Assembly (NCBI GenBank): GCA_965637545.1
Contig: OZ281498.1
Location: forward strand, 17,546,001-17,610,000
DNA from: Phallusia mammillata
Taxonomy: Eukaryota
Direction of reading: 5' to 3'
Length of the DNA: 64,000 nucleotides
In this document: positions 1 to 35,336 of the stretch, piece after piece
How the letters are laid out: every line of letters begins with the position of its first letter
How positions within the stretch are numbered: the stretch's first letter is position 1
Notes under the pieces: generated by a model
What the model was told of the DNA's origin: nothing
What the model saw: the letters and a program-made list of their open reading frames with translations, nothing else
The model's database searches: none
Program-made: the position numbers and the translations under genes

Positions 1-436
1 GACACTATGTCGAGCGATGACGTGCTAGGTCCGGCGCAGGAGTTAAGGGAACTGGGTGTTCTGGTAAGAAGTGTACTCACAAGATACAAAATTCACCACA
101 AACACAAGGATCCGATCTTACGTGGTATCATTTTGGATGTAAATCTCATTGGAATATTTAGACCCCGCTTTTCCTTAAATAATAAAAACTTTCGCCTTCC
201 TTAAAGTTTGGGCTTTGCTGCCGAAATTATACAGATCAGTAATGGTTTTTGTTTAGACTTTTGCACAATTTGTTCGTCCAACTGATACAGAACAATACAA
301 TATGACTCAATTGTTGGAGATAGCTGGAAATGACAGTCGTATTCTTATCACCAATCAAGACGGTTCATCACTTGGTTCAAGGCCCAGACACATTAAGAAA
401 TATGTGTGTGATGATATATGCCGATTTTATCAATAA
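1..436 (+). CDS. LSV copy 0 (subfamily A): last two exons of the vWA domain, 5' part outside the window
   Basis: Exon 1-63 reads DTMSSDDVLGPAQELRELGVL, followed by gtaag. Exon 257-436 follows tttag and reads TFAQFVRPTDTEQYNMTQLLEIAGNDSRILITNQDGSSLGSRPRHIKKYVCDDICRFYQ*. Both are paralogous to exons 8-9 of the other copies. Confidence 0.85.
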
Positions 437-1094
437 ATTATAGAAAATACTTGTTAAACCAGAATCGAATAGAAGTCTCAATATGTCGTGTCTGATATTT
501 GCACAGACTTAAGCAACGACGTTACAGAAAAGAAAGCAGTTTTGCTTTCTTTGGAGTTGTCACTATTTTCACTCAGACTTATCTTCTGGAGCCTTTACAA
601 TTTCTTGTTCAACACAATATTATTATAAAAGTTCCCGAGGGTCATACTTATATAAAGTAGATCAAGTTAACTATTGCGTATTCGCAAATGGGATTTTCGA
701 AAGGTAATTTATCCTAATTGCTGAAACAAGCAGCTTTTTGTCGTTCGTACATGAAAATCATCCGATTGTTTTGCAGTTTATTTTCTACAAGCATTCATCT
801 CAAGAATATTTCGAGGACAAACTTTCTAAAGCTATGATTTAAATTCGGTAATTAAAGGACTCAAATATAACACTTTAGGCTACTATTTGCACATTATTTT
901 TAAACATAACACTAATTTGGATTAAATTACAGCTTGAAATCGTGTTTGACCCTTATTCGGCCTTCTACATGTCACGCTATATGTAGCCAAAGAATTGCAA
1001 TGCCTACCCTGAGGCGCAATATACGGTGTTTTGGTACAGCTTTGCCAGGCTTAACGACGCCACAGTATAGATATAGTTTAAAATGTGCTGTAGA

Positions 1095-3770
1095 ATGAGA
1101 AAGTTGGTTGGATTGGTTATTATCCTTTCGATTCTGGACTGTACAAGAGGTAAAAAGATAAAACTCAAACTCATGTATGCAGAACCATGATGTGAAGTGT
1201 CGTATAGATTATAAATCGTCAAATATTGATATGAGGTCAACTTTGCTACGAGATTAAACAACCAGTTATAAATTTTATTCAGGTATGCAATGTTGGCGTT
1301 GTGATCAAGCTTCAAACGAAAAAGATTGCAGAATATACGGAAAACCGGTCAGATGTATAGGAGATCAAGTAAGCTACATTACAATTCGTTAAATGATTAG
1401 ATTGATACAAACAACAGTTGTGTTAAAGAATAAACAGTATTCAATAGATTTACTTTTACACAGCAAATGTTTTGGTACGTATTACCATAGCGAAGTAATG
1501 TGAGATAGTAACTGTTGTTGTTGTAGCGCAATTAATCAGGGTGTCAAACTGTTTGTAATTTGGCTTTAGGTTTGGTTCAAGTTTAAAAACAAAATATAGA
1601 GCTCAAATGGTTCGGGTTTTTAGAAAAATGTAAGTTAATGTTCAGTTTATGTTTAATGGATAAATGCAATTTCGTTTGGACTCTCTGCTTTAAATGATTT
1701 GTGATCCAAATTTGTTGCAAAAATCAATGTATGCGGAAACGTGATTTGGAAAGGGTGCAAACAACGAAAAGCATGTATGGATAGTCAGATGCAGGTTAAC
1801 TATATTATACAATAATATATGTAGATATAATTGAATTTGCTGGAAAAGTAATACTGTAAATCATGCGAGAATGATTATATTTGTTCTATTTTGCCAAATT
1901 TGAGCAAATTCTAAGCTTTTTTCCGGTTTAGTATCAAATGTCATACTTCATTTGTCAATCTAAAAAGGCAATAAAAGCACAGTGTTATAAACTATGTAGT
2001 GAGAAACCATCAAAAATCACACACAACTAAGAAGTCGTGTTTTTAAACTCGATGTAAATGTACATGCAAAAATGGTTTGTATTTTGATTTCTGCGTATTT
2101 CACAGAACTTTTGGGGTGGTCAAAAACCTCAGCATCAATGCAATACAGATCAAAGCTCGTCCATTTGCACTTGCTGCTGCAAAACTTTGATGTGCAACAA
2201 ACACATTACATGTCAAGGTGAAACCTATGATAAAGCAAGCTGTAAAAACAAATTGTAAGTTATAGTTTTCATTTCTTGCGTTTTCAACTATAGTCAGTTA
2301 ACGGTAAAATGTTTTTGCAGCAAAGAAAAAATGTCCAGTTATTTCTGGCAACTTCAAGAACGGTAAAGTCACTTGTAGTAACAGCAACAACGTTGGTTCA
2401 GTTTGTAAGTTTTCTTGCACCAGTGATGGTTATTTCATCCAACCTACACCAGAAGCTGGGACATCTCGATGTCTTCCTAACGGACAGTGGAGTCAACCCA
2501 CACAGAGCTGTGCAAGTTAGTCACAAACCTTGGTATTCAATTATTAGGCAACAATAACTACTGTTTTCCAGGACCCTGTCCTCCATTTGTTCCAGTGGAT
2601 TCAATGGCTTTGGTGCATGCAAGCGACGAAGCTACATTTCAAAGATTGGCAGATAACGTATTGAAGTAAATACTCATGTAATAGCTGATATTTATTAAAC
2701 TCTTTTAGACCTGTTTTAACACGGTCATATATCAATCCAAATATAACCGCCAATCGCCATCAAATGTGTTACTAATTAAAACATTTTAAAGTACAAAGTT
2801 TTTAGGACTTATCACATTGGTCCTGATTCAATGAGAATTGCACGCATTCCATTCAGTGGAAGGGTACACACAGAAAATGCTGTTACTTTTGACGATAATG
2901 CTTGCGACAGCAACAAAACTGCGTTTATGGAACTTATACAGAAGCAGAAATTTGCGAAAACCGGTAATCGTTGTTCAAATGTAGTATGAAACCTTTCTAC
3001 ATTCATGCAAAATATACGTTTTTTGGTTTCAAAACACCAAAAATATATAGAAGTTAAATAAATTTAAATCTAGTGGCCCAAAGTTTATCAACTAGCTGTG
3101 TGTTTCTCAACAAATTAACGCCAAATACACATAATTTACCATAAAAAGTACCAGTTTACCAATAGTTAGATTTGATTAGTATGAAAGATTAGTATAAATA
3201 CGAACTGTAAACGATGTATCTTACATTTTACCGTTTTCCAGATGACGGACTTGTAAACATTGGTGCAGCATTAAGGTATGCTCTGGACGTTTTGAAAAAT
3301 CCCAAGCGTCTTCCTAGTGATCACCTGGATGTTGTTATTGTTGCCACCGACTCCGCGTCTAGTGATGACGTTTTAGGTCCAGCGCAAGAATTGCGAGAAT
3401 CTGGTGTTTTGGTAAGAAACAATTAAAATTATTAAAATACCAATTCACTATACTCGCATAAATAAACTCAAAATTATAAGTAAACTGACAATGTTTGGAT
3501 ACAAGAACAACGGATAAAACATGATTCGATTTCTGATGTGTAGATAGTAGCTTGTATTGTTCACATGTAGTTTAAAGACTTTTGGCGTTTCAGACGTTTG
3601 CACGTTTTGTTCGTCCAACAAACAAGGAATCTTACAACATGACGGAGCTTATGGAAATCGCAGGAAACGAAGATCGGATCACAATCAACAATTTAGGCAA
3701 GCCACCTCAAAAGCGTGGAATCAGTTTTATGCAATCTTATGTGTGTAACAATATTTGTAAATTTTACTGA
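1095..3770 (+). pseudogene. LSV copy 1 (subfamily A): secreted Ly6/uPAR-sushi-vWA gene, disabled
   Basis: Exons 1095-1149 (signal MRKLVGLVIILSILDCTRG), 1283-1368, exon 3 broken (about 1464-1497 and 1735-1794 with ~235 nt between), 2106-2217, 2321-2515 (sushi), 2572-about 2677, 2806-2963, 3242-3411, 3594-3770. In-frame TAA at 2667-2669 where copies 2-6 have TCA/TCT (Ser). Confidence 0.85.
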
Positions 3771-6929: not shown

Positions 6930-9330
6930 TTATTGATACCGACATATATCATTGCACACGTATGTTTGTACAAGGTCGGAGCTTGAAATGGATCTAGAAG
7001 GTCCCAAATCAGTAATAAACACTCGCTCCTCGTCTCCAGCAATCTCTAGAAGTTGGGTCATGTTAAATTCCTTTGTGTTAGTATCCCCGACGAATCGAGC
7101 AAAGGTCTAGAAACGTACAGGAAAAAATAAAAACCCATGCAAAATTCTTATGTTTAGCTTTGAATTTTTTCTCAAGTAAGCCACTTGCAACAAAGAAATG
7201 TAGGGCTTACCAAAACCCCTAAGTCTCGCAAGGCCTGCGCGGTTTCTAACACTTCATCATCAGATTGGGCGTCGCTTGTAACGATAACAACATCGAGATG
7301 GTGTTTACGAAGTCGTATGTCCGTATTAAAAACGCTGAGAGCGTAGTTAAGCGCGGCACCGATGTTAACCAGACCATCTTCTGAAAAAAAAACAGAGTCG
7401 TTCCACAAAAACCTTATCCAATAAAACTTTACATATGCGTCAGTGGGTATGAGAGCATGTATATTTTTTAAAGCTATACTCAAAGAGGCGGTTGGGCCAA
7501 CAATCTAAAAAAATACAGGTTGATGTTATGGAAAGATAATTTTCCTAACTTATATATTGTACATGGACGTATTTATCCGTCTTTACCAGTTTGTGCAAAT
7601 TTTTGCCCCTTAACAAGTTCGAAAAAGTACGAGCTGTTGATGTTAATATTTGTGTCTTCGAATGTAATTGCATCCTCAAGATGAACTCTGCCGCTAAAAG
7701 GAATGCGTGCTATCCTCATCGAATCCAATCCCATGTGGTACGTCCTACATGTGGTTTTTAAGTTTAGATGAACTATCGCTAGCAGTAGCTAAGCTTATAA
7801 GTGCAATTGTTATTGTTTTAGCAGAGTGTTTGAAAAAACTAATTGCTCAAAAAAACAGAGATAATTATTTTTTCTAATTAGTAAAAATTTAAGGCAGTTA
7901 TACATTGCCATGTAAAACCTTGTTGTATTCTCACCCGATTGAAGATTTTGCGAGTTTATTAGTCATCGTTTGCCATGTTTCCGCATCACTTGTATGTACC
8001 ATGACCATGTAGTCGATTGGAACGTATGGTGGACAGGGCCCTAAACAAAAATGTCAAAGTTTGTAAAATATTTACCTAAAAAAATAGTTGCTTTCACTTA
8101 CTTGCGCAGCACTGCTTTGGTTGACTCCACTGTCTGTTACGAAGACATCGAGATATCCCAGCTTCTGGTGTGGGTTGAATCGAGAATCCATCGCTGGTGC
8201 AAGTAAACTCACAAACTGAACCAGGATTGTTGCCATCACTGCATTTCACTTCACCATTGGAGAAAGCAGTCGATACTGGTGGGCATTGTGCATTGGCTGA
8301 AAAATGGATTTGGTTTGGCATTTAGCTACGTTTTTGTAACAAAACAAATAATTATTTCGTGATTTTCTAGAATATTATAGAATTGTCAATGGCTTGTAGT
8401 AAATATCACCTGCACACATGTTGTTTTCGTTGCACATGGTGGTTTCACAGCAGCAAGTACAAAGAGAAGAGGTACGGTCACTATTGCATTGCTGCTGATG
8501 AGCCCGACCATCAAGAAAGTTCTATGGAAACCAACAATCAAATAATTGTCTTTCTAGCTTGAAGTAACACTTTCTCTATTAACATACTAACAGTGATATT
8601 TGAAGAACAGTTTTGAAAGTTTACGTTCTAACATACCTGCATTTCGCCGGATTTACAAGCAGTCCTCTGTTTGCACCCTTTCCATAATAAATTTTCCGAG
8701 TCTATGCGTCTTACTACGGTCGAACAAATGTCCTAGAAAAGAATTTCACTTCAAATTAAATTTAGTAGTACTAAGACGCGTTGTCGTGACTTTTTGGAGA
8801 ATTGCAGTCACAGTTTTTGTTTACTGGACTTAATTTCAGTTTAGTTGAATTTGTTCCGAAAGTGACTCGAGTATCATTGTTTCAATGGACTAACATAGTC
8901 TCATAAAATAACTGCAGTTTTACCAAATGTTTTTTTTTCTAAAATTAAATTAACTTACTTGTAGTAAATCGTTAAAAAATCTGTCTAAAACTGAAATACC
9001 TGTGATCCAATGCATTTTACCGCCTGGCCAAACAATTTACATTCCTCCAAACTTGTTGCTTGGTCACATTGCCAACATTGTAAACCTATGGAATTAAAAA
9101 AAAAACAAAAATTATCAAAAATGTTCGCTTTGTTCGCCTTGAGAAGACTGACGATCTCAATTGCCGTAACCACTATTTTTAGTCCTATAGGACTACATTT
9201 GCGTCATGCACTAAAACCTTCCTTAGCAACTAATTTGCGTTTTTTTTACATTTTGAAATATTGTTTGTGTTATATCTTGTGAGACTTGCAAAATTCCAAC
9301 AAAAACTAAAATTGCTGTGCAAGTTTTCAT
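6930..9330 (-). CDS. LSV copy 2 (subfamily B): all 9 exons open, but intron 1 donor reads AT instead of GT; possible pseudogene
   Basis: Exons 9330-9276 (MKTCTAILVFVGILQVSQG), 9085-9000, 8732-8637, 8521-8410, 8296-8102, 8040-7935, 7744-7587, 7380-7211, 7106-6930. Phases are consistent with no stops. The donor after exon 1 is ATATAA, against GTATAA in copy 3. Confidence 0.8.
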
Positions 9331-9930: not shown

Positions 9931-12591
9931 ATGACTTGCACAGCAATTTTAGTTTTTGTTGGAATTTTGCAAGTCTCACAAGGTATAACACAAACAATAT
10001 TTTACAATGTAAAACAGTGCAAATTTAAGTTGCTAGGGAAGGTTTTAGTGCATGACGCAAATGTAGTCCTAAAAATAGTGGTTACGGCAATTGAGATTGT
10101 TGGTCTACATTTTTCTTCTCAAGGCGAACAAACCGTGCAATTTTTGTTTAATTTTAGTTTATTTCTTATTCCATAGGTTTACAATGCTGGCAATGTGACC
10201 AAGCAACAAGTTTGGAGGAATGTAAACTGACTGGCCAGGCGGTAAAATGCATTGGGTCACAGGTATTTCAGTTTTAGACAGATTTTTTATTTACCACATA
10301 ATTTAATCTCAGAAAAGAAACATTTAGTGAAACTGCAGTTAGTTGATGATACTATGTTGGTCCGTTAAAACAACGGTTTACTCGATTCACTTCCCGAGCA
10401 AAATCAACTAAACTTGAATTAAGTCCAGTAAAAAAAAATGGACTTTAGTTTTCCAAAAAGTCATTGCAGCACTGACATTATTACAGCAACAGTACATTAA
10501 CCACGCGTTTTAGTACGACTAAATTTAATTTGAAGTGAAATTCTTTTCCAGGACATTTGTTCGACCGTCGTAAGACGCAAAGACTCGGAAAATATAATAT
10601 GGAAAGGTTGCAAACAGAGGACAGCTTGTAAATCTGATGAAATGCAGGTATGTTAAAACGTAAACATTTAAAACCGTTCTTTAAATATCACTGTTAGTAT
10701 GTTTAGTGTTACCTCAAAGCTAGAAAATACATTATTTGATTGTTGGTTTCCATTGAACTTTCTAGATGGTCGGGCTCGTCAGCATCAATGTAACAATGAC
10801 CGTAGCTCTTCTCTTTGCACTTGCTGCTGTGAAACCTCCATGTGCAACGAAAATAACATGTGTGCAGGTGATATTCACTCCAAATCATTGACAATCATAT
10901 TCTATTCCAAAAAAAATCACGACAAAATCCTTTGTTTTGTTATGAAACGTAGCTAAATTCCAAACCAAATCCATTTTTCAGCCAATGCACAATGCCCACC
11001 AGTACCGACGGCTTTTTCCAATGGTGAAGTAAAATGCAGTAATTTCAACAATCCTGGTTCAGTTTGTGAGTTTACTTGTACCAGTGATGGATTCTCGATC
11101 CAACCCACACCACAAGCTGGGACATCTCGATGTCTTCGTAACGGACAGTGGAGTCAACCAAAGCAGTGTTGCGCAAGTTAGTAGACATATGAGTTGTTAT
11201 AGTTCAATTTTTTAACAATATTGACGTTTTTGTTTAGGGCCCTGCCCACCATACATTCCAATCGACTACATGGTTATGGTACATGCAAGTGACGCCGAAA
11301 TGTGGCAATCTATAACCAATAAAGTGGCAAAATCTTCAATCCGGTGAGAATACAACAATGTTATTACTATGTCTAACTGCCTTAAATTTTTGTTAATCAG
11401 AAAGAAAGAAAAATACACCTTGTTTTTTGAGCAATTGGTCTTTTCTTTTTAGAATAAGCTTAAACAGTAACAATTGCACGTATAGTTACTGCTAGCGATA
11501 GTTCATGAGTATAATTGTTTTTAGTATGACCAAAATACTAAATTAAATACTGCCATGCAGGACGTACAAGATGGGTTTGGACTCAATGAGAATGGCACGC
11601 ATTCCTTTTAGCGGCAGAGTTTATCTTGAGGACTCAATTACATTCGAAGACACACATCTCGACATCAACAGCTCGTCCTTTTTCGAACTTGTTAAGGAGC
11701 AAAAATTTGCACAAACTGGTAAAGATGGATCTATACGTCGATTTATACTAAGTTAGGAAAATCATCTTTCCATAACATCAACCTGTGACAATTATTAGAT
11801 TATTTGCCCAACCGTCTCTTTAAGGACAGCTTTCAAAAAAAGCTCTACAGGAAAAGAGTAAGTCAGTCTCACACTATTCCATGCAGCACAACAACAAAAT
11901 TCTGCAGTGCAAATGAATAAGGGACAGTAGGTATTTTGGTACTCGCTGACTATAGGGATTTGAACAGGCTTTTATGGCCACTGACGCATATGTAAAGTTT
12001 CATTGGATGGGATTATTGTTGAACTAATCTGTATTTTTTAGAGAATGGTCAGGTTAACATCGGTGCCGCGCTTAAATACGCTCTCAGTGTTTTTAATGTG
12101 GACGTACGACATCGTAAACACCATCTCGATGTTGTTATCGTTACAAGCGACGCCCAATCGGATGATGAAGTGTTAGAAACTGCTCAAGCCTTGCGAGACT
12201 TGGGGGTTTTGGTAAGCCCTACATTCCCTTGTTATAAGTGGTTTGCTTGGAAAAAATTAGAAGCCAAACTTATGAATTTTGCATTGGTTTTTATTTTTTT
12301 CTGTACGTTTTCTAGACCTTTACTCGGTTCGTCGGGGATACCAACACGAAGGATTTTAACATGACCCAACTTCTGGAGATTGCCGGAGACGAGGAGCGAG
12401 TGTTTATTACAGACTTGGGACTGGATCCATTTCAAGCTCCGAACTTGTACAAACATACGTGTGCAATGATATATGTCGGTATCATTAAACTTGGAAAATT
12501 ATCGTTTGGGCAAAATAAACAACATAAGAAGGGTGAAACAAAAGTGATTTGTTGTTGTTTTAAACTCGGGGTAGTCTTTATTGAGTGGTAA
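9931..12591 (+). pseudogene. LSV copy 3 (subfamily B): exon 4 acceptor mutated and last exon frameshifted
   Basis: Exons 9931-9982, 10177-10262, 10552-10647, 10756-10867 (acceptor cattg, against catag in copies 2 and 4), 10982-11176, 11238-11343, 11561-11718, 12042-12211, 12316-12591. A 4-nt deletion near 12421 (ggaccttctagatcc > ggactggatcc) shifts the frame and removes the terminal VCNDIC. Confidence 0.8.
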
Positions 12592-13715
12592 AAAATTATA
12601 AGAAGCAAAGGTTTTACATTTCGATGTTTTTCATCGTGTCAAAGCCTGAGGTGGAAGGCATGTTTAACAGAGTTTGAAAGGAAAGTACCGCTTTATATCA
12701 TTACGCGATAATGAATTTCGCTTCGCTGCAATGAGAAATGGACTAGTTTACGAAAAAAAGAAAAGTTTAAAACTGCGTTAAAATTGTACAACAACCCAAA
12801 ATGCTTGTTTACTTGTGGTGATTCTGCTTAATTAATTTGCCGCAAAGCTCAAAAGGTATGTGAATGACGAAATATAAAATTCGGATACATCATTCCTCTT
12901 ACACTAATTATATGGTTCTCAAAATGCAATTAATAAAAAAGTTTGCTTCAATCTGTCGTAATTGTTTGGTTAGTTATGTTGGTATTTATCCTTATCAATT
13001 AAGGAGTTGGGAAACGGTTTTGCAAAAAATGGAGACCTACGTCATGCAATGTTGTGGTGCAAACTGTACATTTACATTTCTAAACGCAGATGCTGTTCCC
13101 ATAAATGCAAAGAGTTTGTTAAGGTTTACAATGCTGGAAATGCGAGCAAGCCTCAAACTTCCGGGACTGTTTAAACTTTAGAAAAAGCGTAATATCCTGG
13201 AAAGCAGGTAATTTGAGACATATAAATAAGTCTTTTCATTTCTGCGACTTTTAGAGTGGTATTCTACTTTTCATATCCCATATCTGTTTGATTTTTTTAA
13301 GTCGAAAGAAAAATCGAAATATTATGTGGAAAGGTTGTTGTATGGCATGTAATGGTATGATGGTAACAAAATTAGTTTTTTGGAAAAATTTAATGCAGAA
13401 AGAAGTAGAATTTTACGATTTTGTTTTTCAAATATAAGTTCGATTAAACATGCTTTTACAACTTCATAGGGTGTCGACTTTTCCAACATCACTGCAATAC
13501 TAATCGAAGCTCGTCATTCTGCACTTGTTGGAAAACGTAAATGTGCAACTGAAACACTTTACGCATAGGTGTCAACCACTGCTATTCGAATTGTATTCAA
13601 TTTACTCGTTTAGAACGCAGGACGCTTCCGAGAACCAATGTCAAGGTGTTTTTTTACATTTCTGTTTGTGCATCGATGCACCGGACTACTTCTACAAGTT
13701 CCTGCCCAACAGACA

Positions 13716-22394: not shown

Positions 22395-25300
22395 ATGTGG
22401 TTTTACATTGGATTTTTGCTGTACATTGGATTGTTGCAAGGCACTAGAGCAGGGGTTCTTAACCTGGGGTGCACGCACCCCCAAGGGGTGCGAGAACTGT
22501 TCCTAGGGGGTGCGGGGATGCTGAATCATTAAGGTTGGTTAGGTCTATTCTATTTAAGCAATTACAGAAGGGGGAGCGAAAATTGGTTAGTGATTTGAAA
22601 GGGGGTGCGAAAATTGGTTGGTGATTTGAAAGGGGTGCAGCAAGGAAAAAAGGTTAAGAACCACTGCACTAGAGGTTTGCGAATCACTTTTTTTAACTTT
22701 TGGGTATTTTTATTTTGCAATTAATTTGTATTTTGTTAAAACCTTGCTTTAACGTTGACTGAAATCTTGTTTTAAACGTTTTCTACATAAGCTATTGCTT
22801 CCCTAGAGGGCGCCATGCTTTTAGTTGAAACCCTATATACATTGTATCAAAATTGTTTAAAATATATGCAAAACTAAAGGTTTACAATGTTGGAAATGTG
22901 ATCAAGCAGAAACTGTACAAGATTGTGCAAGATACGGAGAGACAGTTTCTTGTTCCGGAAAACAGGTAATTTACTATGCAACTAATGCAGTGATCATCCT
23001 ACAACAGTTTTTGTTAAATCTGTAGTTGCATAACATATACTAATTAATGATCATGAAAGGGCTAATTTTGTCAGACCCATCACATTGAACTTCGTGTTGG
23101 TGGATTTTGTAAAGCATTTTCACTTTAGTAGCCTCCTTTTAACACGCAAATAAAACCACTGTATGTATTTCGTCAAACGGTTTAAAGCTAAAGACGACAT
23201 ATCCACAGTTTGCAGATTTCAAAAACTATCTGAACAACATTTTTGACCAATTACGTTTTCTCATGCAGGATATCTGTTCGACAGTTGTACGTCGCGAGAA
23301 AAATCGAAACATAGTGTGGAAACGATGCAAACAACGCATGGCCTGTGAGGCTGGTGAAAAACAGGTAATTGATTAACCGAGACAGATTGCTTGGCAAAAA
23401 AGTCGATCTCTAGCGCCACTTCCCGGCTGGATATATTGTACTTGTTCAACAGCAAACCAGGCTTTTTTTAGAACTTTATTGGGAGTAGAACTTTTCAACA
23501 TCAATGCAACACAGATCAGAGCTCATCTATTTGTACATGCTGTTGCAAATCCTCGATGTGTAACCGAAATACTATGTGTAAAGGTCATAATTTTTAATGC
23601 TTGAGTAGATACAAACTGGGTATTGGTGTGATTCGAAAGGTCCAATGGTAACAGCTGTTCATGTTGACATAAACAAAAATAATGTATTTAGATCTAATAA
23701 TTTGATGACATATGTTAATTTGTTCTACAGCTGATGCAAAATGTCCGCTTATCTCCAACACGTTCAGAAACGGAGAAGTTAGTTGCAGTAATGGCAACAA
23801 TCCTGGTTCAGTTTGTAAGTTTACTTGCACCAGTGATGGATTCTCGATCCAACCCACGCCACAAGCTGGGACATCTCGATGTCTTCGTAACGGACAGTGG
23901 AGTCAACCGAAGCAGTGCTGCGCAAGTTAGTATTTGAACTTATGTGACACACTATAGACAAAAATCAGATATAAGTTATATATTTTTTTCAGGGCCATGT
24001 CCTCCGTATGTTCCTATCGATTACATGGCTTTGGTGCATGCAAGTAACGAAGTAGCTTGGAAACAAGTGGCAGATAACGTTGTAAAGTCAATTCTCACGT
24101 AAGATATTAAAAAATATGGTGTCAAAACCTTTAATCCAGGGGTTCTTAACCAGGGGGTACAAGAACTGTTCTTAGGGTGTGCGGCGTGCGGGGATGCTTT
24201 ATAAAAATTAAATTACAATGGTTTTGTTATTTAAGCAAATGCAGAAGGGGGAGCGAAAATTTGTGGTGATTTGAATGGGGTCCTGCAAGTAAAAAGCTTA
24301 AGAACCACTGCTTAATCGAAATACATTAGCATAAATATTGTATTCAGAAAGTTTTTTTTTAATCATTGGATGTACGTAAAGGGACTTTGTTTAAATATCT
24401 TGTAGTAGTTTTTATTTTGCTTTACCATGTCTTTGGATTTGCCTTACAGAGCATACCACACTGGACCAGACTCAATGAGGATAGCTAGGATTCCATTCAG
24501 CAGCAGAGTGCATACTGAAAACGCTATCGACTTTAAGAATACCCCTCCTACGATTAACAGCACGGCGTTCTTTAAACGAGTTAGTGCTCAGAAGTTTGCC
24601 AAGACAGGTGGGAAAGTAATCGTCAAGATGCATAAAAAAACTGGAATAGTGAATGAAAATTAATCTAAGATATATTTGTTTATTCCACGCAAAAAAAAAG
24701 ATTTTAAGTTGGGTTTAAGTCTAGATTGAAGTTTTTTAAGTTAAACACTATACACGTACCTGTTTGTAAATCTATGAGTTGTAACCAAAAAGGCGACATT
24801 TTGTTGCTTAGATTTAAATAAAAACGCTTGCTAACCTCCGTGATTATCAAGTTAAAACATAAAATTCTGACTACATTTCATCAATCTATTTCACCATTAG
24901 ATAAAATTTTGGGAACCTTATTGATAATGATCAACGTCTTTTCTGTTTACAGACGATGGCCTTGTTAACATAGGAGTTGCGCTTAAATATGCCGTGCAGC
25001 GCTTTAAGAAAGACAAACGACTCCAAAGTGACCATTTGGATATGTTGATAGTCGCAACTGATTCCATGTCAGATGATGACGTGTTGACACCTGCACAAGA
25101 GTTGCGAGATTTAGGAGTGTTGGTAAGAGCTTTAGAACAGCAACAAAACGAGAGACTATTTATGACAAAATAAGTTACACACACTGGTGAAATTCATTTT
25201 TTTGTCGGTCGGTTCTATTACAAAAGGTCATACTTTTCAGCCGGTTCTGTTACAAAAAGTCCATTAACAGTAACCTGTAGCGGCCGTAATTTACTTAAAA

Positions 25301-26918
25301 ATCTGTGCAGCCTGGATCTGCACCGACCGCCGCACTAGGGGGTTTCCTCATTTGTCTTGATCGCAACACTGTCTGCCTGATGGTACAAATTTCTCCTTGG
25401 TTGCACAACAGCATTGGTTCTCTGTTAAACGAACAGAAACGTGTCACAATCGGCAATAATACGCACATTCAATATGACCGATAAACTTCACAAAGAAATA
25501 TGTTACGTTAAGAAAGTCAATACTTCTTAAATCATACACAACATTATCACGACATTTAACTAACACGCTTTACACATTCAATTACGTACCAACTTGTTAG
25601 GAGTCCAGGACTAAATTACAGGCACTTTGACGGACTAAGACGTTTCAGCATTTCAATAACTTTAACTTTCATGTTTTTATAGCTACACATAAAACACTAA
25701 TGTTAGAACAAAACATTTCCAAAACTAAATTGAATCAACTATGAACTGCGACAACTAAAACTGCTGCTTACAGCACAGAAAGAAACTGTAAAACGTGGTC
25801 AGCACAAGATTGCGACACTGATGACATCACACACATTGTTACGTTTGGAGATTTCTAACCAATCCTGGCAGACGCTTTGTTACGTCATAGTCAATGAAGT
25901 GAGATTACTGACGTGGCCTAGAAACAGGGAAAGAAAGCACATGCAAGTAATTTCTCGCTGTAACAGTAACCAGTAATGCTAACCGGTTCGCTGATCTTAT
26001 TTCGTGAGACGGTTCTACAGAACCGAAGTGAACCGGTATGACAAAGGAAATAACACTGCTACAGACATTTAAAATTTGTAAAGGACAAAATAATAAATAT
26101 ATTGTTAACTTACAGGTATCCAAAATTGATTTCACATGTTTAACGTGTTTCTATCTGTTAGTGACAAAGATAGCTGGTAAATATATTGGTAAAATGCACA
26201 GCCTGTCATGTTCCCGTTTTCACGGGTACGCAAAAGTTTGGGACTGACCATCGGAAGTTCTCTGATCGGCAGCAAACCTTTTCTTTTACATTTATTCACG
26301 TCCAACCACCAGTAATCAAAACAACAAAAACAATTCAGCACTACTTCGCAATTATCTCTATCACGTTCTATATCATTCTCTGTTATATTATGTTATCGTT
26401 AGATGGGCGCTCTTATAACGTTGATGCAACAATGAAAAGGGTAAAAGGCACTAACATGCCGTGACGATTTCCTTTAGATAAAACAATGGACACTGCAACG
26501 GGCAACGGCGCACGATAAAACTGGCACACTATAACAATGACAACACAATAGCGCCTGCAACGATAGATTCTAGAGACAAACAGACGTTGCCCGTGATCCG
26601 TGGTAATTGGGTCGCGCGACATTGTCAAGGGGCGGTTTAGAACATTTGTGACACAGCCCTTGTACCCCTTAAAGCAGCCAACACCTAAACAATAGTTCAC
26701 ACTGCAGATTATATCTATAATATTTTTTTTGGTTTTTCCAGACATTTGCCAGATTTATGCGTCAGTCAATCAACGACCCGTATAACATGACACAGCTGAT
26801 GGAAATTGTTGGAGCAGAAAATCGGGTTGCTATTACCAATTTAAAGGCGTCACTACAGAAAAAGAGACCAGAATTTGTTCCACCTTGTGTATGCAATGAC
26901 ATATGTCGCTTTTATTAG
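22395..26918 (+). CDS. LSV copy 5 (subfamily C): exons open, but a MITE sits between the last base of exon 1 and its donor; probably disrupted
   Basis: Exons 22395-22449 (MWFYIGFLLYIGLLQGTRG), 22880-22965, 23269-23364, 23472-23583, 23731-23925, 23993-24098, 24450-24607, 24953-25122, 26742-26918. The original donor gtttgc is displaced to 22675. Confidence 0.8.
22450..22666. mobile_element. hAT (Charlie-like) MITE, family 2 (TIR caggggttcttaacct)
   Basis: TIR caggggttcttaacct / aggttaagaaccactg; perfect TSD cactagag at 22442-22449 and 22667-22674; the equivalent site in copy 6 (27653-27660) is empty. Confidence 0.92.
24137..24310. mobile_element. hAT MITE, family 2, second copy (intron 6 of LSV copy 5)
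   Basis: caggggttcttaacc ... cttaagaaccactg; imperfect TSD ctttaatc / cttaatc; absent from copy 6 intron 6. Confidence 0.8.
25276..25965. mobile_element. Solo-LTR-like insertion nested in the family 3 MITE
   Basis: Begins TGTAGCG and ends CGCTGTAACA; gtaacc is duplicated on both sides; absent at the paralogous position in copy 6 (near 34795). Confidence 0.65.
26204..26653 (-). mobile_element. Solo LTR (TGTCA...TGACA)
   Basis: Inverted termini tgtca / tgaca; 5-bp TSD cagcc; AATAAA on the minus strand; absent from copy 6 intron 8. Confidence 0.75.
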
Positions 26919-27027
26919 ACGTTTCTGTTGTTAAAAAAAGCTATGAAAAACAAAAACACATTACTGAGAAATCTAATATTTTGAAATGAATGAAACAAAA
27001 CTACGGTATGGTTGCTTGTAGTTATTC

Positions 27028-27110
27028 AAGAAAAATAAAATTTGCTACAGAAGTTTTCATATTTTCGTCCCGATTCGTAGTTACAGAGTGTATAATTACT
27101 CTGCATTACC
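27028..27110 (-). pseudogene. Relic of a subfamily B exon 1 and its 5' flank
   Basis: aagttttcatattttcgtcccgattcgtagttacagagtg...ctgcattacc matches copy 4 at 17773-17832. The minus strand reads ATG AAA ACT TCT GTA GCA AAT TTT ATT TTT CTT and then joins the copy 5 3' flank. Confidence 0.65.
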
Positions 27111-27605: not shown

Positions 27606-30600
27606 ATGTGGTTTTACATTGGATTTTTGCTGCACATTGGATTTTTGCAAGGCACCAAAGGTTTGCGAATTACTTATTTCAACTTTTAGGCATTTTTGTA
27701 TTGCAGTTAAATTGTGGTTTGTTGAAACTTTGCTTTAACGTTAACTGAAATCTTGTTTCAAGCGTTTAATCTGTTGCTGCCAGACATACCATAATAACAA
27801 TTATTGGCATCCCTGTAGATTTATATTGTAAAATACATAATGACACGTTGTAACACACACAAAAAACTTTAAAACTTAACGTTAACTTTAGTTTGGACTT
27901 CCTATGCATTTTAATAAAATTGTTTAAAATAAATGCAAAACTACAGGTTTACAATGCTGGAAATGTGATCAAGCAGCAACTGTACAAGATTGTGCAAAAT
28001 TCGGAGAGACTGTTTCTTGTTCCGGAAACCAGGTAATTTCCTATGCAACTAATGTCGTGATCAACATACAATTTTTTTTTGTCAAATACGTAGTTGCATA
28101 ACATATACCAGTTAATGATCATAAATGGGCTAATTCTGTCACACCTATCACTTTGAACTTCGTGTTGCTGTTGTTTTTTACTCAAGCATCTTTTACTTTA
28201 GTAGTGTTTAGTAGCATCTTCTCAACACGCAAATAAGACCATTGTTTGTATTTTACAAACAGTTTGTTACTCGAAGCTGACGACAACAGTTTGTTACTCG
28301 AAGCTGACGATCCATAGTTTGCAGATCGTAAAATACTGTTGACGCAGAACTTTGAATTAAAAAAAAACTTAAAAACATTTCTGTCCAATTACGTTTTCTC
28401 ATGCAGGATATCTGTTCGACAGTTGTACGTCGCGAAAAAAATCGAAACATAGTGTGGAAAGGATGCAAACAACGCTTGGCCTGTGAGGCTGGTGAAAAAC
28501 AGGTAATTGGCTAACCGAGACAGATAGCTGAAATAAAGGAAAATTGAACGCTACTTCCCGGCTGGATTTATTCTACTTGATTATCAGCAAACCAAGCTTG
28601 AATTTTATGTTGTTAGAACTTTATTGGGAGTAGGACTTCTCAACATCAATGCAACACAGATCAGAGCTCATCTATTTGTACATGTTGTTGCAAATCCTTG
28701 ATATGTAACCGAAATACTATGTGTACAGGTAATAAATTGAAATGCTTGAGTACATGTAAATTGGGTATTGATGTGATGCAAAAGGTCCAATGGTAACAGC
28801 TGTGTATTTTCCTAGGAAATCAGAGTTCAATAATGTATTTGATAAAATAATTTGGTGACATGTTTTAATTTGTTCTACAGCTGATGCAAAATGTCCGCCA
28901 ATCTCCAACACGTTTAGGAATGGAGAAGTAAAATGCAGTGATTCCAACAACCATGGTTCAGTTTGTGAGTTTACTTGCACCAGTGATGGATTCTCGATTC
29001 AACCCACACCAGAAGCTGGGAGATCGCGATGTCTTCGTAACGGACAGTGGAGTCAACCGAAGCAATGTTGCACAAGTTAGTATTTGGAATTATGTGAAAG
29101 ACTAACGACAAAAATCACATGTCTTTTTTTTCAGGACCATGTCCTCCGTATGTTCCTATCGATTACATGGTTTTGGTGCATGCAAGTAACGAAGTAGCTT
29201 GGAAACAAGTGGCAGATAACGTTGTAAAGTCAATTCTCACGTAAGAATGAAAAAAAATATGGTGTCAATACCTCAAACCAAAACATATCAGCAAAATCAA
29301 AATAACTGTATTTAGAAAGCAATCATTGGATGTACGTAAAGGGATTTTCTTTACAAATCTTGTGGTAGTTGCAGTTTATGTGACATATTTTGCTTTAACA
29401 TGTCTTTGGTTTTGACTTACAGAGCATACCACACTGGACCAGACTCAATGAGGGTATCTAGGATTCCATTCAGCGGCAGAGTGCATACTGAAAACGCTAT
29501 CGACTTTAATGATCCTGACATGATTAACAGCACGGCGTTCTTCAAACGAGTTAGTGCTCAGAAGTTCGCCAAGACAGGTGGGAAATTAGTGCTCAAAAGT
29601 TTGCAAAGACAGGAAAAAAAGATAATGAAACTGTTAAGGATTTCTATTGTTGCGTTGTAATTTCGAACGTTGTGTTTTAATTAGCACCTCATTTCGAGCC
29701 TTGTATGCCTTTAGCGCAGTGCAGCATTCCTTACATTTCAAGTATGGTCCGCAAGCACACTATTCCTAATCTAGCGTGTTTTCCGTGGAATGTAAATGGA
29801 TAATCGTTGCCTATATAATGCTGCGCATGTTGAGTTTAATCATTCTATTTTATTTCCGTTTACTTGGTGTCGTAAATACAACAACTTGAAGAATACAACA
29901 ATTGGCGACGAGGATGGGATCCAGCTGAACGAGGTAAACGCAGCCTGGTCCTATAAAATCTCTAATAATGGAGAAATTTTTAGAAGCCATGCAAAAACAG
30001 ATGGAACTGCAAGAACGCCGACACCAAGAGCAAGAACGCCGACATCAAGACCAAATGGAAACTTTGATGAACTTTTTGAAGCAGTCGTCGACATCTGAAA
30101 GTTCCGCCACGCCCAGTTCCAGCACAGCCACGCCCAATTTTCCAGCGTTTGATCAAACCATGGAATTGTGGGAAGATTATTGGTCGAGATTTCGCACGTT
30201 TTTCAAGGCACATGCTGTGTCCGATGACCGCAAAGCACAAGTGTTTTTGACCAACCAGACTAGTACGGTATATCAGTTGTTGGCCAATTTAGCAGGTCAA
30301 AGTTCGCCGCCGAAGCAAGTCAACGATTTGACGATGGAAGAAATCGTAGGTTTCATGAAAGACCAGTTTGATCCCAAACTTTTTGTTGTGCGGGAACGAT
30401 TTCGCTACTGGAGTGAAATGAAGCGAAAACCAGGAGAAGCAATCCAGGAACTGGCAGCACGAATCCGTCAAGGCGCCAGCACCTGTGATTTTCCATCCAT
30501 CAAGGATCCGTTAGATGAGGCACTTCGTACACGCTTTATTTGTTCCGTAAAAAATGAAGCAGTTCTAAAGGCCGTATTTAAAATTAAAAGTGACGAGTTG

Positions 30601-33600
30601 ACTTTCGCACGGGCAGTTCAAGTCGCCATGGAGACGGAGGACGCCGCTAGAGTTGCTAAAGAAACCGTTTACGGGACGCAACAAAGTGAGGTAAACAAGG
30701 TGCGCAAGTTTCGTCCAAGGAATCAGCGACACCGGGAGGTTCCTTCTGCAGAGCTCCAGAACGAGAATTCAAGCTCATATAATTGTTATCGTTGTGGCAA
30801 GAAGGGCCATTTTGCAAGTGAATGTCGTTTTAAGGCTTCAACTTGCAGTTTTTGCAAACGACGTGGGCATTTACAGTCGGTCTGCAGAAAGAAAGCGTAT
30901 CACGAATCAATGAAAGTAAAATGTGTCGACAAGTTTACTGTGAAAAATATTTCAAACCAAGTAGCTAAAGTTCCAAAATTGGAGGTTCCAATTTCTATCA
31001 ACAAGAAAACTTGCATCATGGAACTCGACACCGCTGCAGGTGGAAATTTTCTGTCCATTGCGGCCTGGAAAAGTCTTGGAAAGCCGAAGCTTCGAGACCC
31101 AGATACGCGATATCAATCTGCTACAGATCATCCCATGCCAATCCTAGGTTCTTTTACAGCTATGGCGAGACATGCTGGGTCAAACAAGGATTGTAACATT
31201 ACGTTACTTGTTTCAAGCATCCCTAAGCTGAATCTATTAGGTCGTGACGCCATCAAGAAGATGCATATTTCTTTAGACGACATTCTTCACAAAGAAAATC
31301 CGGTCAACATTATCGACAAAATTGAGGAACAAAATCTCGCACAAGAGTGCCGAAAACTTTGCGAAAGTTTTTTTGCGTTAATCCCCAACTTAAAACGCAT
31401 CGTCATCCATTACCTCTACCAGACGAATTAATACGAAGACTTGGGGGTGGACATGGTTTTACAAAGATAGATCTCGCGGATGTGTATAATCAAATCATGC
31501 TAGGCCCCGAAAGCAGAAAGAGGTTGGCACTTAGCACGCACCGTGGTGTGTTGCTGCAAAACGTTTTGCCGTTTGGTATATCTTCTGCTCCAAGTTATTT
31601 TCAGAAAATCATGGATGACCTTACTTGTGATTTACCAGGAGTTGCTGTATATTTAGATGATATCCTCGTGAGTGGTTCTTCTGCCGATGATCATCTCAAA
31701 AATCTGCGACGTCTTTTTGAAAGATTAAACAAGAAGGGTCTTCGTTGTCGCATGGAAAAATGCAAATTTGCCCAAAACAAGGTGGAGTATTTGGGCCACA
31801 TATTATCAAAGGACGGAGTAGAAAAAGGTGCAAAAGTCGATGACGTCATTAAAATGCCTCCGCCGCACAACGTCTCAACACTTCGTTCGTTTCTTGGTTC
31901 TGTGCAGTTTTACGGCAAGTTCATGACACCGAATTTTTCAACAGTGTCAGAACCGTTACACCGACTTACAAGAAAAGGTGTCGAGTGGAAGTGGCAAGAA
32001 ACAGAACAAGACGCATTTGAGCAACTAAAACGTATGTTGTCATCCAACAACGTGCTCACGCATTTTGACCAGACGTTGCCTGTTGGAATTGCGTGTGACG
32101 CCTCTTACGTTGGTATCGGAGCTGTATTGTTTCACCGTTATCCAGATGGTAGCGACCGGCCGATAGCCAATGCATCGAAGACATTGACCGACAGTCAACG
32201 AAATTACAGTCAAATACAAAAAAAAGCTTTAGCAATTGTTTACGCTCTAAAGAAGTTCTATCAATACTTGTTTGGGAGGAAGTTTATCCTTATGACCGAT
32301 CACAAGCCTTTGCTGTCGCTGTTTGGGCCAAACAAGGCTACTCCAGCCCTTGCAGCCAATCGTTTAGCTCGATGGGCATTATTCTTAAATCAATTTTCAT
32401 ACGACATAGTTTACCGCAAAACGTCAGAGCATCAAAATGCTGATGTCCTAAGCCGCTTACCTGTGGGTCAAGATCCAGTTTTTGACGGAAAAGAAAGTGC
32501 TCACGATGTAGATACCGTTTGCAATATTCGGACTTTGAGTTTACAAGTTCAACCGTCAGATTCGTATTCTTTGCAGAAAGAGACTGCCAAAGATCCTACA
32601 TTGACCAAGGTGATGCGTTATACTCGAGAAGGATGGCCGGCGAAATTTCGCGTAGAGGATATAAATGATCCAGCAGAGAGTTTTCGAAAAATTAAAGAAT
32701 CACTGAGCACATGCTACGGATGTCTATTATACGGCTCACGAGCGGTGATTCCTGAAAGTATTCGACCAAAAGTTCTTAAACTACTACACGAAGGACACTT
32801 CGGTATGCAGCGTATGAAGCAGTTGGCTCGTACAGCAGTCTACTGGCCAAACATCGACAGGGACATCGTTGATCTCTGCCGAAAGTGTAATACGTGTGCG
32901 GTATATCAGAACGCTCCATCAAAAGTTGCCCTGCATCCATGGATGAGTCCAGAAAAGCCGTGGAGTCGGTTACATGTTGACCATGCAATTAACTTCATGG
33001 GTTACAACTGGTTGCTGCTAATTGACGCATATTCGAAATACCCGTGTATTCATCCGACGCAGTCGATATCAGCAAAACTACAATCGATCTTTTGGAGAAC
33101 GACTTTTCTCATTTCGGTTATCCTCACACGCTTGTGACAGATAATGCTCCCACGTTCATGTCCGAACAATTTCAGAATTATTGCAAAGAGCGAGGAATAG
33201 TTCACGTTACAGGAGCACCTTACCATCCAGCCACTAATGGCGCTGCTGAGCGCTTGGTACAAACTTTTAAGCAGGCTCTTCGGAAGTCGTCAAGTCCGCC
33301 TAAAGAAGCGCTGCTCGAGTTTTTAATGCAGTACCGCCGAACACCGACCGGAAGTGGTTATTCACCAAGCGAGCTTTTAAACCACCGACAGATGCGTACA
33401 AAGATTGATGCATTGCTTCCATCTCCAGCCCACACCACACAAGGGATCCAATCGAAGATCGCCACCAAATCTCAGTCTCTAGTGCGAAGAGCAAACGTTT
33501 ATTCATACAAAGTTGGTGATCCTTGTTATGCCCTTTACTTTGGTCCTAGGCACAACCAACAACCACGCTGGGTGGCAGCAAAAGTTATCAAGCGACATGG

Positions 33601-35336
33601 ATGTCGCAGCGTTGAAGTACGTGTTATTCCGCGAGGACCTATATGGAGACGTCATAATGAACAACTCCGTCCTCGTTACGCAACAGAAGAAGATGAAAAT
33701 CCGGCGGATGATCCTAACCCCGTGAGTGAGAGAATAAATGAGGCAATACCTGACACGACACAATCCTCACCACCGAAGGTCGCGGACCCCGAACATTTAG
33801 AATATGGTCCCGGCAATCCGAGACGTTCAAAACGACAACGTAAACCCCGACAATTATTGTGTTGCTAATTATCGTTTTTCATACTTGTTGGGGAGGTGTT
33901 AAGGATTTCTATTGTTGCGTTGTAATTTCGAACGTTGTGTTTTAATTAGCACCTCATTTCGAGCCTTGTATGCCTTTAGCGCAGTGCAGCATTCCTTACA
34001 TTTCAAGTATGGTCCGCAAGCACACTATTCCTAATCTGGCGTGTTTTCCGTGGAATGTAAATGGATAATCGTTGCCTATATAATGCTGCGCATGTTGAGT
34101 TTAATCATTCTATTTTATTTCCGTTTACTTGGTGTCGTGAATACAACAACTTGAAGAATACAACAGAAACAACTGAAGTAGTCGCTGAAAATTAATCTAA
34201 TATATATTTGTTTAATCTTGAAAAGAGAGTTTAGGTTGAGATTAGTCAAGATTTAAGTCTTTTGCTGGAACACTATACACGGTTCTGTTTATAAGTCTAA
34301 TAAGTAATCACCATAAGACGACATGCTTCATTGTTTAAATTCAAAAGTCTTGCTATCATAATTGATTATCAAGTTAAAACATAGAAAAATATGTCTCCAA
34401 TCAATCAATCCTTATCAACGCCAGATACAATTTTAGTAACGTTATGAGTGATGATCAACGTCTTTTTTGTTCACAGATGATGGTCTAGTTAACATAGGAG
34501 TTGCGCTTAAATATGCCGTGCAGCGCTTTAAGAAAGACAAACGACTCCAAAGTGACCATTTGGATATGTTGATAGTCACAACTGATTCAATGTCAAATGA
34601 TGACGTGTTAGCACCAGCACAAGAATTACGAGATTTAGGAGTGTTGGTAAGAGCTTTAGATCAGCAACAAAACGAGAGACTATCTATGAAAATATAAGTT
34701 ATACACACTGGTTGAATTCATTTTTTTGTCGGTCGGTTCTATTACAAAAGGTCATACTTTTCAGCCGGTTCTGTTTAAAAAAGTCCATTAACAGTAACCA
34801 GTAATGCTAACCGGCTCGCTGATCTCATTTCGTGAGACGGTTCTATAGAACCGGAGTGAACCGGCTGAATCCCACCACTGGTTATACACAATTCTTTAGG
34901 TTTTGCTTTTGCACAACCAAGGTATGACAAAGGAAATAACACTGCTACAGACATTTAAAATTTGTAAAGGACAAAATAATAAATAACTTATATTGTTAAC
35001 TTACAGGTATCCAAAATTAATTTCACGTGTTTAACGTGTTTCTATCTGTTAGTGACAAAGATAGCTGGTAAATATATTGAAAATATATAAGCAGCCAACA
35101 CCTAAACAATAGTTCACACTGCAGATTATATCTATAATATTTTTTTTTGGTTTTTCCAGACATTTGTCAGATTTATGCGTCAGTCAATCAACGACCCGTA
35201 TAACATGACACAGCTGATGGAAATTGCTGGAGCAGAAGATCGGGTTGTTATTACCAATTTAAAGGCGTCACTACAGAAAAAGAGACCAGAATTTGTTCCA
35301 CCTTATGTATGCAATGACATATGTCGCTTTTATTAG
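27606..35336 (+). CDS. LSV copy 6 (subfamily C): intact 383-aa ORF, Gypsy element in intron 7
   Basis: Exons 27606-27660, 27947-28032, 28407-28502, 28617-28728, 28881-29075, 29135-29240, 29423-29577, 34477-34646, 35160-35336. All introns are GT-AG; the total is 1152 nt with no internal stop. Confidence 0.88.
29903..29920 (+). other. Primer-binding site, complementary to the 3' end of tRNA-Ser(GCU)
   Basis: tggcgacgaggatgggat is the reverse complement of ATCCCATCCTCGTCG-CCA, the metazoan tRNA-Ser(GCU) 3' end as I recall it. Confidence 0.8.
29968..31431 (+). CDS. gag: Gypsy Gag (two CCHC knuckles) and aspartic protease
   Basis: CYRCGKKGHFASEC and CSFCKRRGHLQSVC; protease MELDTAAG. The frame is lost at the deletion junction near 31375. 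Confidence 0.9.
   Translation: MEKFLEAMQKQMELQERRHQEQERRHQDQMETLMNFLKQSSTSESSATPSSSTATPNFPAFDQTMELWEDYWSRFRTFFKAHAVSDDRKAQVFLTNQTSTVYQLLANLAGQSSPPKQVNDLTMEEIVGFMKDQFDPKLFVVRERFRYWSEMKRKPGEAIQELAARIRQGASTCDFPSIKDPLDEALRTRFICSVKNEAVLKAVFKIKSDELTFARAVQVAMETEDAARVAKETVYGTQQSEVNKVRKFRPRNQRHREVPSAELQNENSSSYNCYRCGKKGHFASECRFKASTCSFCKRRGHLQSVCRKKAYHESMKVKCVDKFTVKNISNQVAKVPKLEVPISINKKTCIMELDTAAGGNFLSIAAWKSLGKPKLRDPDTRYQSATDHPMPILGSFTAMARHAGSNKDCNITLLVSSIPKLNLLGRDAIKKMHISLDDILHKENPVNIIDKIEEQNLAQECRKLCESFFALIPNLKRIVIHYLYQTN
31347..33868 (+). pseudogene. pol: Gypsy pol (RT-RNase H-integrase), N-terminally deleted and frameshifted
   Basis: FTKIDLADVYNQ, LPFGISSAP, YLDDILV, ACDASYVGIGAVL, LHEGHFG...CRKCNTC, LHVDHA, VTDNAPTF, TNGAAERLV. 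A frameshift near 33070 splits ORFs 31347-33137 and 33044-33868. Confidence 0.9.
34706..34880. mobile_element. hAT-type MITE, family 3 (intron 8 of LSV copy 6)
   Basis: Degenerate TIR cactggttgaattca / tgaatcccaccactg; perfect 8-bp TSD gttataca. The paralogous copy in copy 5 (about 25183-26036) is interrupted by a solo LTR and has lost its right end. Confidence 0.8.

Follow-up and report, generated by a model that had tools for sequence, protein, structure and literature searches.

Six-frame open reading frame (ORF) clustering and exon mapping confirmed that a 64,000-nucleotide stretch of the Phallusia mammillata genome (assembly GCA_965637545.1, contig OZ281498.1, positions 17,546,001 to 17,610,000; the whole stretch is called the window here and positions are counted from its first letter) carries genes for small secreted proteins in a tandem cluster. 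Each protein joins a Ly6/uPAR (LU) domain, a sushi or complement control protein (CCP) domain and a von Willebrand factor type A (vWA) domain. Seven full-length paralogs, c0 to c6, and two gene fragments follow one common nine-exon plan, in which exon 1 (E1) encodes the signal peptide, E2-E4 the LU domain with 14 cysteines, E5 the sushi domain, and E6-E9 the vWA domain followed by the stop codon. The model was built codon by codon on c2, with GT-AG introns and fixed phases, and its exons were then mapped to the other copies. Stop-free six-frame segments clustered into families of 6-8 members each, in a fixed order and on both strands; all nine exon families were recovered, with order and phases constant across the copies. 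The copies, their remnants and an inserted element are listed below.

About -2300 to 436, + strand: c0, beginning about 2.3 kb before the window, exon 3 aberrant; the part inside the window is the 3' end only (tail of E8 1-63, E9 257-433, plus the stop codon)
1095-3770, + strand: c1, pseudogene-like; E1 1095-1150 (uncertain), E2 1283-1368, E3 about 1705-1794, E4 2106-2217, E5 2321-2515, E6 2572-2677, E7 2806-2963, E8 3242-3411, E9 3594-3770
6930-9330, - strand: c2, open frame of 384 residues, exon-1 donor defect; sushi exon E5 8102-8296
9931-12488, + strand: c3, pseudogene-like, head-to-head with c2
13124-13568, + strand: degenerate E2-E4 (LU domain) fragment, with stops inside and without RNA coverage
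14157-17782, - strand: c4, 381 residues, intact, transcribed; E1 17782-17728, E2 17575-17490, E3 17155-17060 and E4 16458-16347 (E2-E4, LU), E5 16239-16045 (sushi), E6 15981-15876, E7 15681-15524, E8 14861-14692 and E9 14324-14157 (E6-E9, vWA)
21025-21584, + strand: degenerate E8-E9 fragment
22395-26918, + strand: c5, exons 2-9 intact, exon-1 donor lost; sushi exon E5 23731-23925
27025-27105, - strand: relic signal-peptide exon 1, from the ORF family of exon 1 of c2, c3 and c4
27606-35336, + strand: c6, 383 residues, every splice site canonical, LTR element in intron 7; E1 27606-27660, E2 27947-28032, E3 28407-28502, E4 28617-28728, E5 28881-29075 (sushi), E6 29135-29240, E7 29423-29577, E8 34477-34646, E9 35160-35336
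29632-34165, + strand: Ty3/gypsy-type long terminal repeat (LTR) retrotransposon of about 4.5 kb in intron 7 of c6; LTRs 29632-29900 and 33897-34165

No additional copy was found in the 7.8 kb upstream of c0. An earlier reading, made from the sequence only, had claimed at least seven paralogs with a single nine-exon plan in both orientations, and the seven full-length copies recovered on the + and - strands bear this out. The same sequence-only reading had divided them into three diverged subfamilies. The divergence stands, but since c0 differs considerably from c1 as well, the number of subfamilies is three to four. Between 9276 and 9982, c2 and c3 form an inverted duplicate pair whose start codons lie about 600 bp apart and which would share one promoter region.

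At least one copy, c4, is transcribed. Contigs of the runs X1 and X6 show exact joints for each of the eight c4 introns, reading CT..AC on the + strand and hence GT..AG on the minus strand, and the joints agree to the base with the exon ends that had been predicted, allowing for the ±1 ambiguity of the mapping. The region 12250-18200 was examined with contigs of two of twelve small runs, of one further small run and of the DNA run X13; no c4 intron joint occurs in X13, though X13 covers the whole region. X1 and X6 belong to two studies and are presumed to be RNA, the run type being a guess from coded metadata; their material was taken as RNA because the contigs are intron-less. With all eight introns spliced in contigs of two studies, the possibility that no copy is transcribed is excluded. 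Of the words sampled from a 10-kb stretch, 12-22% were present in the twelve small runs, which come from three studies, and this fraction is close to the exon content of the stretch. An X1 contig with a depth of 16.8, about 25-fold below c4, covers exon 9 of c3; c3 is still transcribed at a low level.

The copies differ in their integrity. An open frame together with every canonical splice site was found for c4 and c6 only. c1 and c3 are pseudogenes or pseudogene-like: in c1, exon 6 is interrupted by an in-frame TAA and exon 3 is without an AG acceptor, and in c3 the exon-4 acceptor reads TG in place of AG and exon 9 is shifted out of frame by a 4-nt deletion. The exon-1 donor of c2 reads AT, not GT. 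In c5 the conserved exon-1 donor is lost, and splicing from the following phase-1 donor (22509) would lengthen the protein by 20 residues. Exons 4-9 of c0 have canonical splice sites, and its aberrant exon 3 is without the 'DIC' cysteine; a diverged exon 3 without the usual first cysteine is common to c0 and c1. In all, two to four of the seven copies look functional. The two LTRs of the element in c6, 269 nt each, are 99% identical, and the insertion is therefore recent. Pfam models detected zf-CCHC, RVT_1, RNase H and integrase domains in it; its gag zinc knuckle and pol region are spread over three ORFs that overlap, and the core of the integrase is divided between two of them. A different repeat, of about 420 bp, occupies 15100-15520 in intron 7 of c4. 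It is dispersed and not tandem, with 924 first-look candidates genome-wide, scored copies that are 90-97% identical on all large contigs, and a contig depth in the DNA run of up to 1.5e5-3e5. It is probably a SINE-like (short interspersed nuclear element) or MITE-like (miniature inverted-repeat transposable element) sequence.

The mature protein is predicted to have about 360 residues and 24 cysteines, which are distributed in the family as 14+7+1+2, with a 'CCARPCPP' junction. Its C-terminus, 'YVCNDICRYH', directly follows the last vWA helix and is followed by the stop codon. The predicted proteins have no hydrophobic tail and, as had been claimed before, no transmembrane segment, glycosylphosphatidylinositol (GPI) signal or protease, and these features are consistent with secretion without an anchor.

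The 14 cysteines of the N-terminal domain, along with the motifs 'LQCWQC...' and 'CTCCCxxxxCN', are present in all intact copies and in the Ciona and Phallusia relatives described below. The domain has the cysteine framework of LU domains, namely an LxCxxC start, a CCxxxxCN end and at least 8-10 cysteines in about 70-100 residues. When its profile was compared with the PDB sequences, LYPD1 (6zss) matched over the whole domain with an E value of 1.1e-6 and 12 aligned cysteines, and the next matches were LYPD6 (1.2e-3 and 1.6e-3) and LYPD6B (0.018). Some fragment ends are misplaced in three of the alignments, and slightly so in a fourth. In the full-length AlphaFold2 model the LU part had a predicted local distance difference test score (pLDDT) below 50. 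A fold search with the LU model against 48,161 representative chains (VIA-align) returned exclusively three-finger proteins or TGF-beta-receptor ectodomains at ranks 1-39, with Z from 8.3 to 3.6; among them were Lypd6b (8.3), Lynx1 (8.0), SLURP-2 (7.6) and CD59 (7.4), and the first unrelated chain had a Z of 2.4. In Foldseek the top 50 matches were all three-finger proteins, with a best E of 0.012. The named neighbours of the domain in a language-model protein atlas all belong to the LU clan, their scores serving as a lead only. We consider it established that the N-terminal domain is an LU domain of the LYPD1/LYPD6 type. The predicted three-finger fold, which the sequence-only reading had anticipated, agrees with the LYPD1 profile match and with Z values of up to 8.3, and is held with moderate confidence, as is the model itself.

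Exon 5 scored 23.6 bits with the Pfam sushi model PF00084 (cut-off 20.7; E 7e-5), and the consensus cysteines and tryptophan are invariant in the alignment. The domain had been described as a CCP of six-cysteine type; the six cysteines are there, and exon 5 holds a seventh, so that its count (6+1) comprises four canonical cysteines, two that make an extra pair, and a single further one. The best PDB sequence matches of the sushi profile were the complement proteins DAF, C1s, C2b, CR1 and C4BP, and E-selectin was matched too. The vWA domain was recognised by PF00092 in exon 8 alone (E 7e-6) and in the Ciona relative (E 3e-17), in whose AlphaFold model the sushi and vWA domains have pLDDT values of 80-97. 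The order of LU, CCP and vWA is thus confirmed, by Pfam for the sushi and vWA domains and by the LYPD1 profile and the fold for the LU domain. Foldseek placed the vWA nearest to collagen VI alpha3 N5 (E 1.6e-11), VWF A3 and the integrin alpha1/alpha2 I domains, with target-normalised template modelling scores of 0.76-0.81. Its profile matched the PDB sequences of collagen VI alpha3, VWF A2/A3, TRAP/MIC2 and integrin alpha2 (best E 2e-7), and its atlas neighbours were matrilins, collagen XIV and VWA2. The metal-ion-dependent adhesion site (MIDAS) reads H-[AT]-S-[DN]-[AE] as compared with DxSxS, its Thr is replaced by Val, and the beta4 Asp alone is kept. The site is degenerate in all relatives and in all window copies except c0, where the first position is D (LVDANDE). 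A distant LU-sushi-vWA paralog on contig C7 (12792500-12800500, at 3522-3623 therein) keeps a canonical MIDAS loop, 'ILDSSSSVG' (DSSSS), and the loss of the metal site is therefore derived within the family. By sequence and predicted fold, the vWA is of the collagen VI / VWF A3 / matrilin type with a degenerate MIDAS.

Pairwise ratios of nonsynonymous to synonymous substitution (dN/dS) were 0.13-0.47 in each of the three domains, none of which stands out. These values indicate purifying selection throughout the cluster, and no sign of diversifying selection was seen in any domain. When c2-c4 (subfamily A) are compared with c5-c6 (subfamily B), the LU and vWA domains show saturation at synonymous sites, whereas dS in the sushi exon is only 0.42-0.46. 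The similarity is confined to nucleotides 66-195 of that exon, which are 94-97% identical between A and B (89-97% in pairs with c6), as compared with 59-70% in the other exons and 60-71% in the first third of the sushi exon itself. This tract is more alike across the subfamilies than between c5 and c6. Such a pattern indicates gene conversion or an unusual constraint at the nucleotide level. Exon 9 of c4 varies between individuals at 8 of its 168 bases. Of these variants five are synonymous, and four agree with the paralogs c2 and c3. The birth-and-death turnover proposed earlier is supported by the pseudogenes, the fragments, the young LTR insertion and the putative gene conversion.

Full-length relatives were found in Ciona intestinalis (XP_002125201.1/XP_078484189.1), C. 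savignyi (H2ZPS8) and Phallusia mammillata (A0A6F9DKY6). The C. intestinalis protein, of 391 residues and with the plan of the window proteins, was found by an exon-8 profile search. End-to-end alignments of the window copies to the Ciona and Phallusia relatives show 31-34% identity, with E values from 1e-42 to 1e-62 (1e-55 to 1e-62 for C. intestinalis). In common they have the signal peptide, the 14-cysteine LU domain, the CCP, the 'RPCPP' linker, the MIDAS-less vWA and the C-terminal CxxxC, and almost all cysteines are conserved. The mappable exon boundaries of the Ciona gene, those of exons 3, 4, 5, 8 and 9, are placed as in the window; the gene lies outside any tandem array and is seemingly one conserved ortholog. 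Two Clavelina lepadiformis proteins (XP_076816476.1 and CAK8680300.1) share the CCP, the 'PCPP' linker, the change of the MIDAS Asp to His and the C-terminal cysteine pair, at about 35% identity over 260 residues; as annotated they are without the LU domain and have a short N-terminal hydrophobic stretch in its place.

The search of the exon-8 profile against 1.84 billion representatives returned mostly multi-vWA proteins, and the architecture of the family was seen only in P0119, the Ciona relative, and P0093. Word-indexed homolog searches with three queries returned Ciona, Phallusia and Clavelina only and nothing from the present genome; with their length and word limits, they say little about absence elsewhere. 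The family seems to be confined to sea squirts. In the 240-Mb assembly the exon-8 profile matched 40 places and the LU exon-4 profile 57. A LU exon lies 1-6 kb upstream on the same strand of 23 exon-8 matches, two of which share one LU exon, giving at least 22 loci, the window cluster being one among many here; in the eleven loci that were fetched, from five contigs, the order LU, sushi, vWA was found in 11 of 11. On contig C3, at about 25.69-25.75, 26.29-26.31 and 17.97-18.63 Mb, some 30 further LU exon-4 matches have no vWA exon nearby, and these are probably tandem arrays of stand-alone Ly6-type genes. A tree of the sushi domain and exon 8 grouped the Ciona and Phallusia proteins with copies of the present genome at C3:27.1 Mb, and placed the window copies in a clade of 13 genes from this genome only, with 99/98 support. 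From this placement the window cluster is a lineage-specific expansion of a conserved ascidian family. Logan contigs of run DRR090687 contain two single-exon ORFs that are 60% and 55% identical to exon 8 of c2 and c5, and the expanded subfamily probably occurs in at least one other species as well.

Databases already hold the family under automatic names, such as 'MUP-4-like' and 'matrilin-3-like' (both for C. intestinalis), 'Sushi domain-containing' and 'uncharacterized'. A matrilin consists of vWA domains, EGF repeats and a coiled coil, and MUP-4 is a transmembrane receptor with EGF and SEA domains. Neither identity was upheld: Pfam recognises only VWA plus Sushi in the relatives, and the predicted proteins have no EGF, coiled coil or transmembrane segment. 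The earlier statement that no named family has the LU-CCP-vWA order thus holds for the literature, in which searches, including those by accession number, found no paper on the family, and needs amending for the databases. A 2026 survey of non-standard invertebrate LU architectures did not sample tunicates and does not list LU-CCP-vWA (PMC13719153). The gene Ci-sushi, a JNK target in Ciona metamorphosis, was considered as a family member and rejected, as its published quantitative PCR primers (PMC4389792) found no match within 4 mismatches in the 23-kb Ciona locus. KH.L112.30, listed as 'MUP-4-like' and changing in tail regression (PMC8495957), shares only this name with XP_002125201.1, its identity being unverified. 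What is new here is the secreted LU-CCP-vWA order, found in no named family; the modules themselves are well known.

On the 3' side of the cluster, ORFs or exons lie at 42622-43617 (+), 44314-44649 (-), 53212-54252 (-) and 50915-51598 (+). Their contents are a C2H2 zinc-finger ORF of 331 residues, a sulfotransferase exon (PF03567), a TMEM26-family exon by Pfam, and an ORF of 227 residues without a Pfam match that resembles the tail of a non-LTR element.

Then, what might these proteins do? Because the vWA is MIDAS-less and of the matrix class, the disulfide bonding heavy, secretion apparently anchor-free and selection purifying, we favor a secreted, metal-independent matrix or adhesion adaptor, with a probability of roughly 0.45. 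In the way that VWF A3 binds collagen, the vWA of such an adaptor would attach to a matrix component, or else to itself, with no need of metal. Two more protein-binding faces would come from the LU and CCP domains, and the whole could link matrix to cells or to soluble ligands in the epidermis, tunic or blood. The number of working copies would keep shifting through duplication, gene conversion and decay. Several points weigh against this assignment. LYPD-type LU domains usually modulate receptors rather than build matrix, and the likeness of the vWA to matrix-type domains reflects ancestry, not ligand. The Pfam thresholds for UPAR_LY6, Toxin_TOLIP and UPAR_LY6_2 were not reached (E 0.5-3 on the Phallusia relative), and the Pfam LU models gave nothing on the Ciona relative or on single window exons. 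The AlphaFold2 model of the LU domain only is of moderate quality, with a pLDDT of 59.6. Lesions or anomalies affect five of the seven copies, and much of the cluster may be non-functional. The run type of X1 and X6, too, is marked only 'RNA?', as a guess.

The sequence-only reading had suggested a complement decoy. It is known that a CCP adjoining a vWA is the core of complement factor B/C2, which has three CCPs, a vWA with a MIDAS and a serine protease, and that C3b binding, which depends on Mg, needs the MIDAS. A humoral factor for innate immune recognition or complement regulation, whose CCP-vWA part would serve as decoy or regulator by binding C3-like or other opsonins and whose LU domain would be CD59-like, could draw on this shared pair, both domains of which Foldseek aligns, on the complement proteins that head the matches of the sushi profile, and on CD59 among the fold matches of the LU model (Z 7.4); tandem expansion with turnover is also frequent in immune genes. 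The complement matches of the CCP, however, mirror the range of proteins that have crystal structures. Neither factor B nor C2 occurs among the vWA profile matches against PDB sequences at E <= 1e-3, their structural alignments have a large root-mean-square deviation (rmsd), and the window proteins have a single CCP, a degenerate MIDAS and an ORF that ends after the vWA with no protease domain. Given a vWA nearest to collagen VI and VWF and the dN/dS of 0.13-0.47 in which no domain stands out, the evidence is against the complement decoy, and an immune role of this sort appears unlikely. The LU domain could instead point to a matrix-tethered or soluble modulator of receptor signalling, in which a LYPD1/LYPD6-like LU would bind a receptor (nicotinic, or a Wnt co-receptor) and the CCP-vWA part would localise it. 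The nearest solved relatives of the domain, LYPD1 (Lynx2), LYPD6 and LYPD6B by sequence and Lypd6b, Lynx1 and SLURP-2 by fold, are receptor modulators. Nevertheless, the domain is only some 20-25% identical to these relatives, conservation does not extend to the finger loops in which specificity lies, and at least 22 paralogs are many for a developmental signalling modulator, which makes this role quite unlikely. It is a more sweeping proposal, and a decidedly improbable one, that placing a LYPD1/LYPD6-type LU domain on a CCP-vWA was a chordate invention confined to tunicates, giving matrix-anchored modulators of cholinergic, Wnt co-receptor or complement-like receptors, with arrays that diversify the ligand-facing fingers. 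If this were true, the tunicate LU-CCP-vWA modulators would be a new class of extracellular regulators.

The state of the copies bears on two further explanations. The array could be largely decaying, with c4 and perhaps c6 the sole working gene and the rest duplication debris without a collective function. The disabling lesions of c1 and c3, the exon-1 donor defects of c2 and c5, the aberrant exon 3 of c0, the two fragments, the relic exon 1 and the retrotransposon in c6 all fit such decay. On the other hand, pairwise dN/dS is 0.17-0.30 even in pairs with c2 or c3, and c3 is still transcribed. We hold general decay to be improbable; it would in any case describe the status of the copies and is compatible with any function of c4. 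The multi-copy arrangement, with turnover and gene conversion, and the 8 of 168 bases at which individuals differ in c4 exon 9 would also suit a gamete-recognition or allorecognition family, that is, secreted ligands that are polymorphic and sit on the egg coat, the sperm or the surface of the colony, and known ascidian recognition genes include CCP-bearing proteins. Most of the c4 variants, though, are synonymous or common to c2 and c3, selection appears purifying throughout, and Ciona seemingly has a single conserved, unclustered ortholog. A recognition role is thus very improbable.

Whether or not the proteins prove to be matrix or adhesion adaptors, the family is a sizeable unstudied part of the ascidian secreted proteome, being conserved, present at no fewer than 22 loci in this genome and expressed from at least one copy. 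Names such as matrilin-3-like, MUP-4-like and P-selectin-like mislead, and their replacement is due. Tunicates are the closest invertebrate relatives of vertebrates, and the ligands of the family could inform tunic and matrix assembly, blood-cell adhesion and innate recognition in these animals.

The window proteins resemble known systems in each of their parts. As in factor B/C2, the CCP is followed directly by the vWA, and Foldseek aligns 281-309 columns across both domains; in contrast, factor B/C2 has three CCPs where the window proteins have one and a serine protease where they have none, and the rmsd is 13-14 Å. The best matches of the vWA by both sequence and fold are collagen VI alpha3, VWF A3/A2, the matrilins and the integrin alpha1/alpha2 I domains, of which VWF A3 is likewise without a working metal site. 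Unlike those proteins, the window protein has a single vWA, with the MIDAS Asp changed to His and the Thr to Val, and has neither EGF nor collagen repeats nor a coiled coil. The N-terminal domain opens with LxCxxC and closes with CCxxxxCN, as in LYPD1, LYPD6 and LYPD6B, CD59, uPAR and the snake three-finger toxins, and the likeness in fold to these proteins amounts to Z values of 6.4-8.3. The window LU differs from them in two extra cysteines (the CCC and a trailing C) and in having no GPI signal. Whereas they are stand-alone proteins with single or multiple LU domains, GPI-anchored or secreted, the LU domain of the window proteins is fused to a CCP and a vWA.

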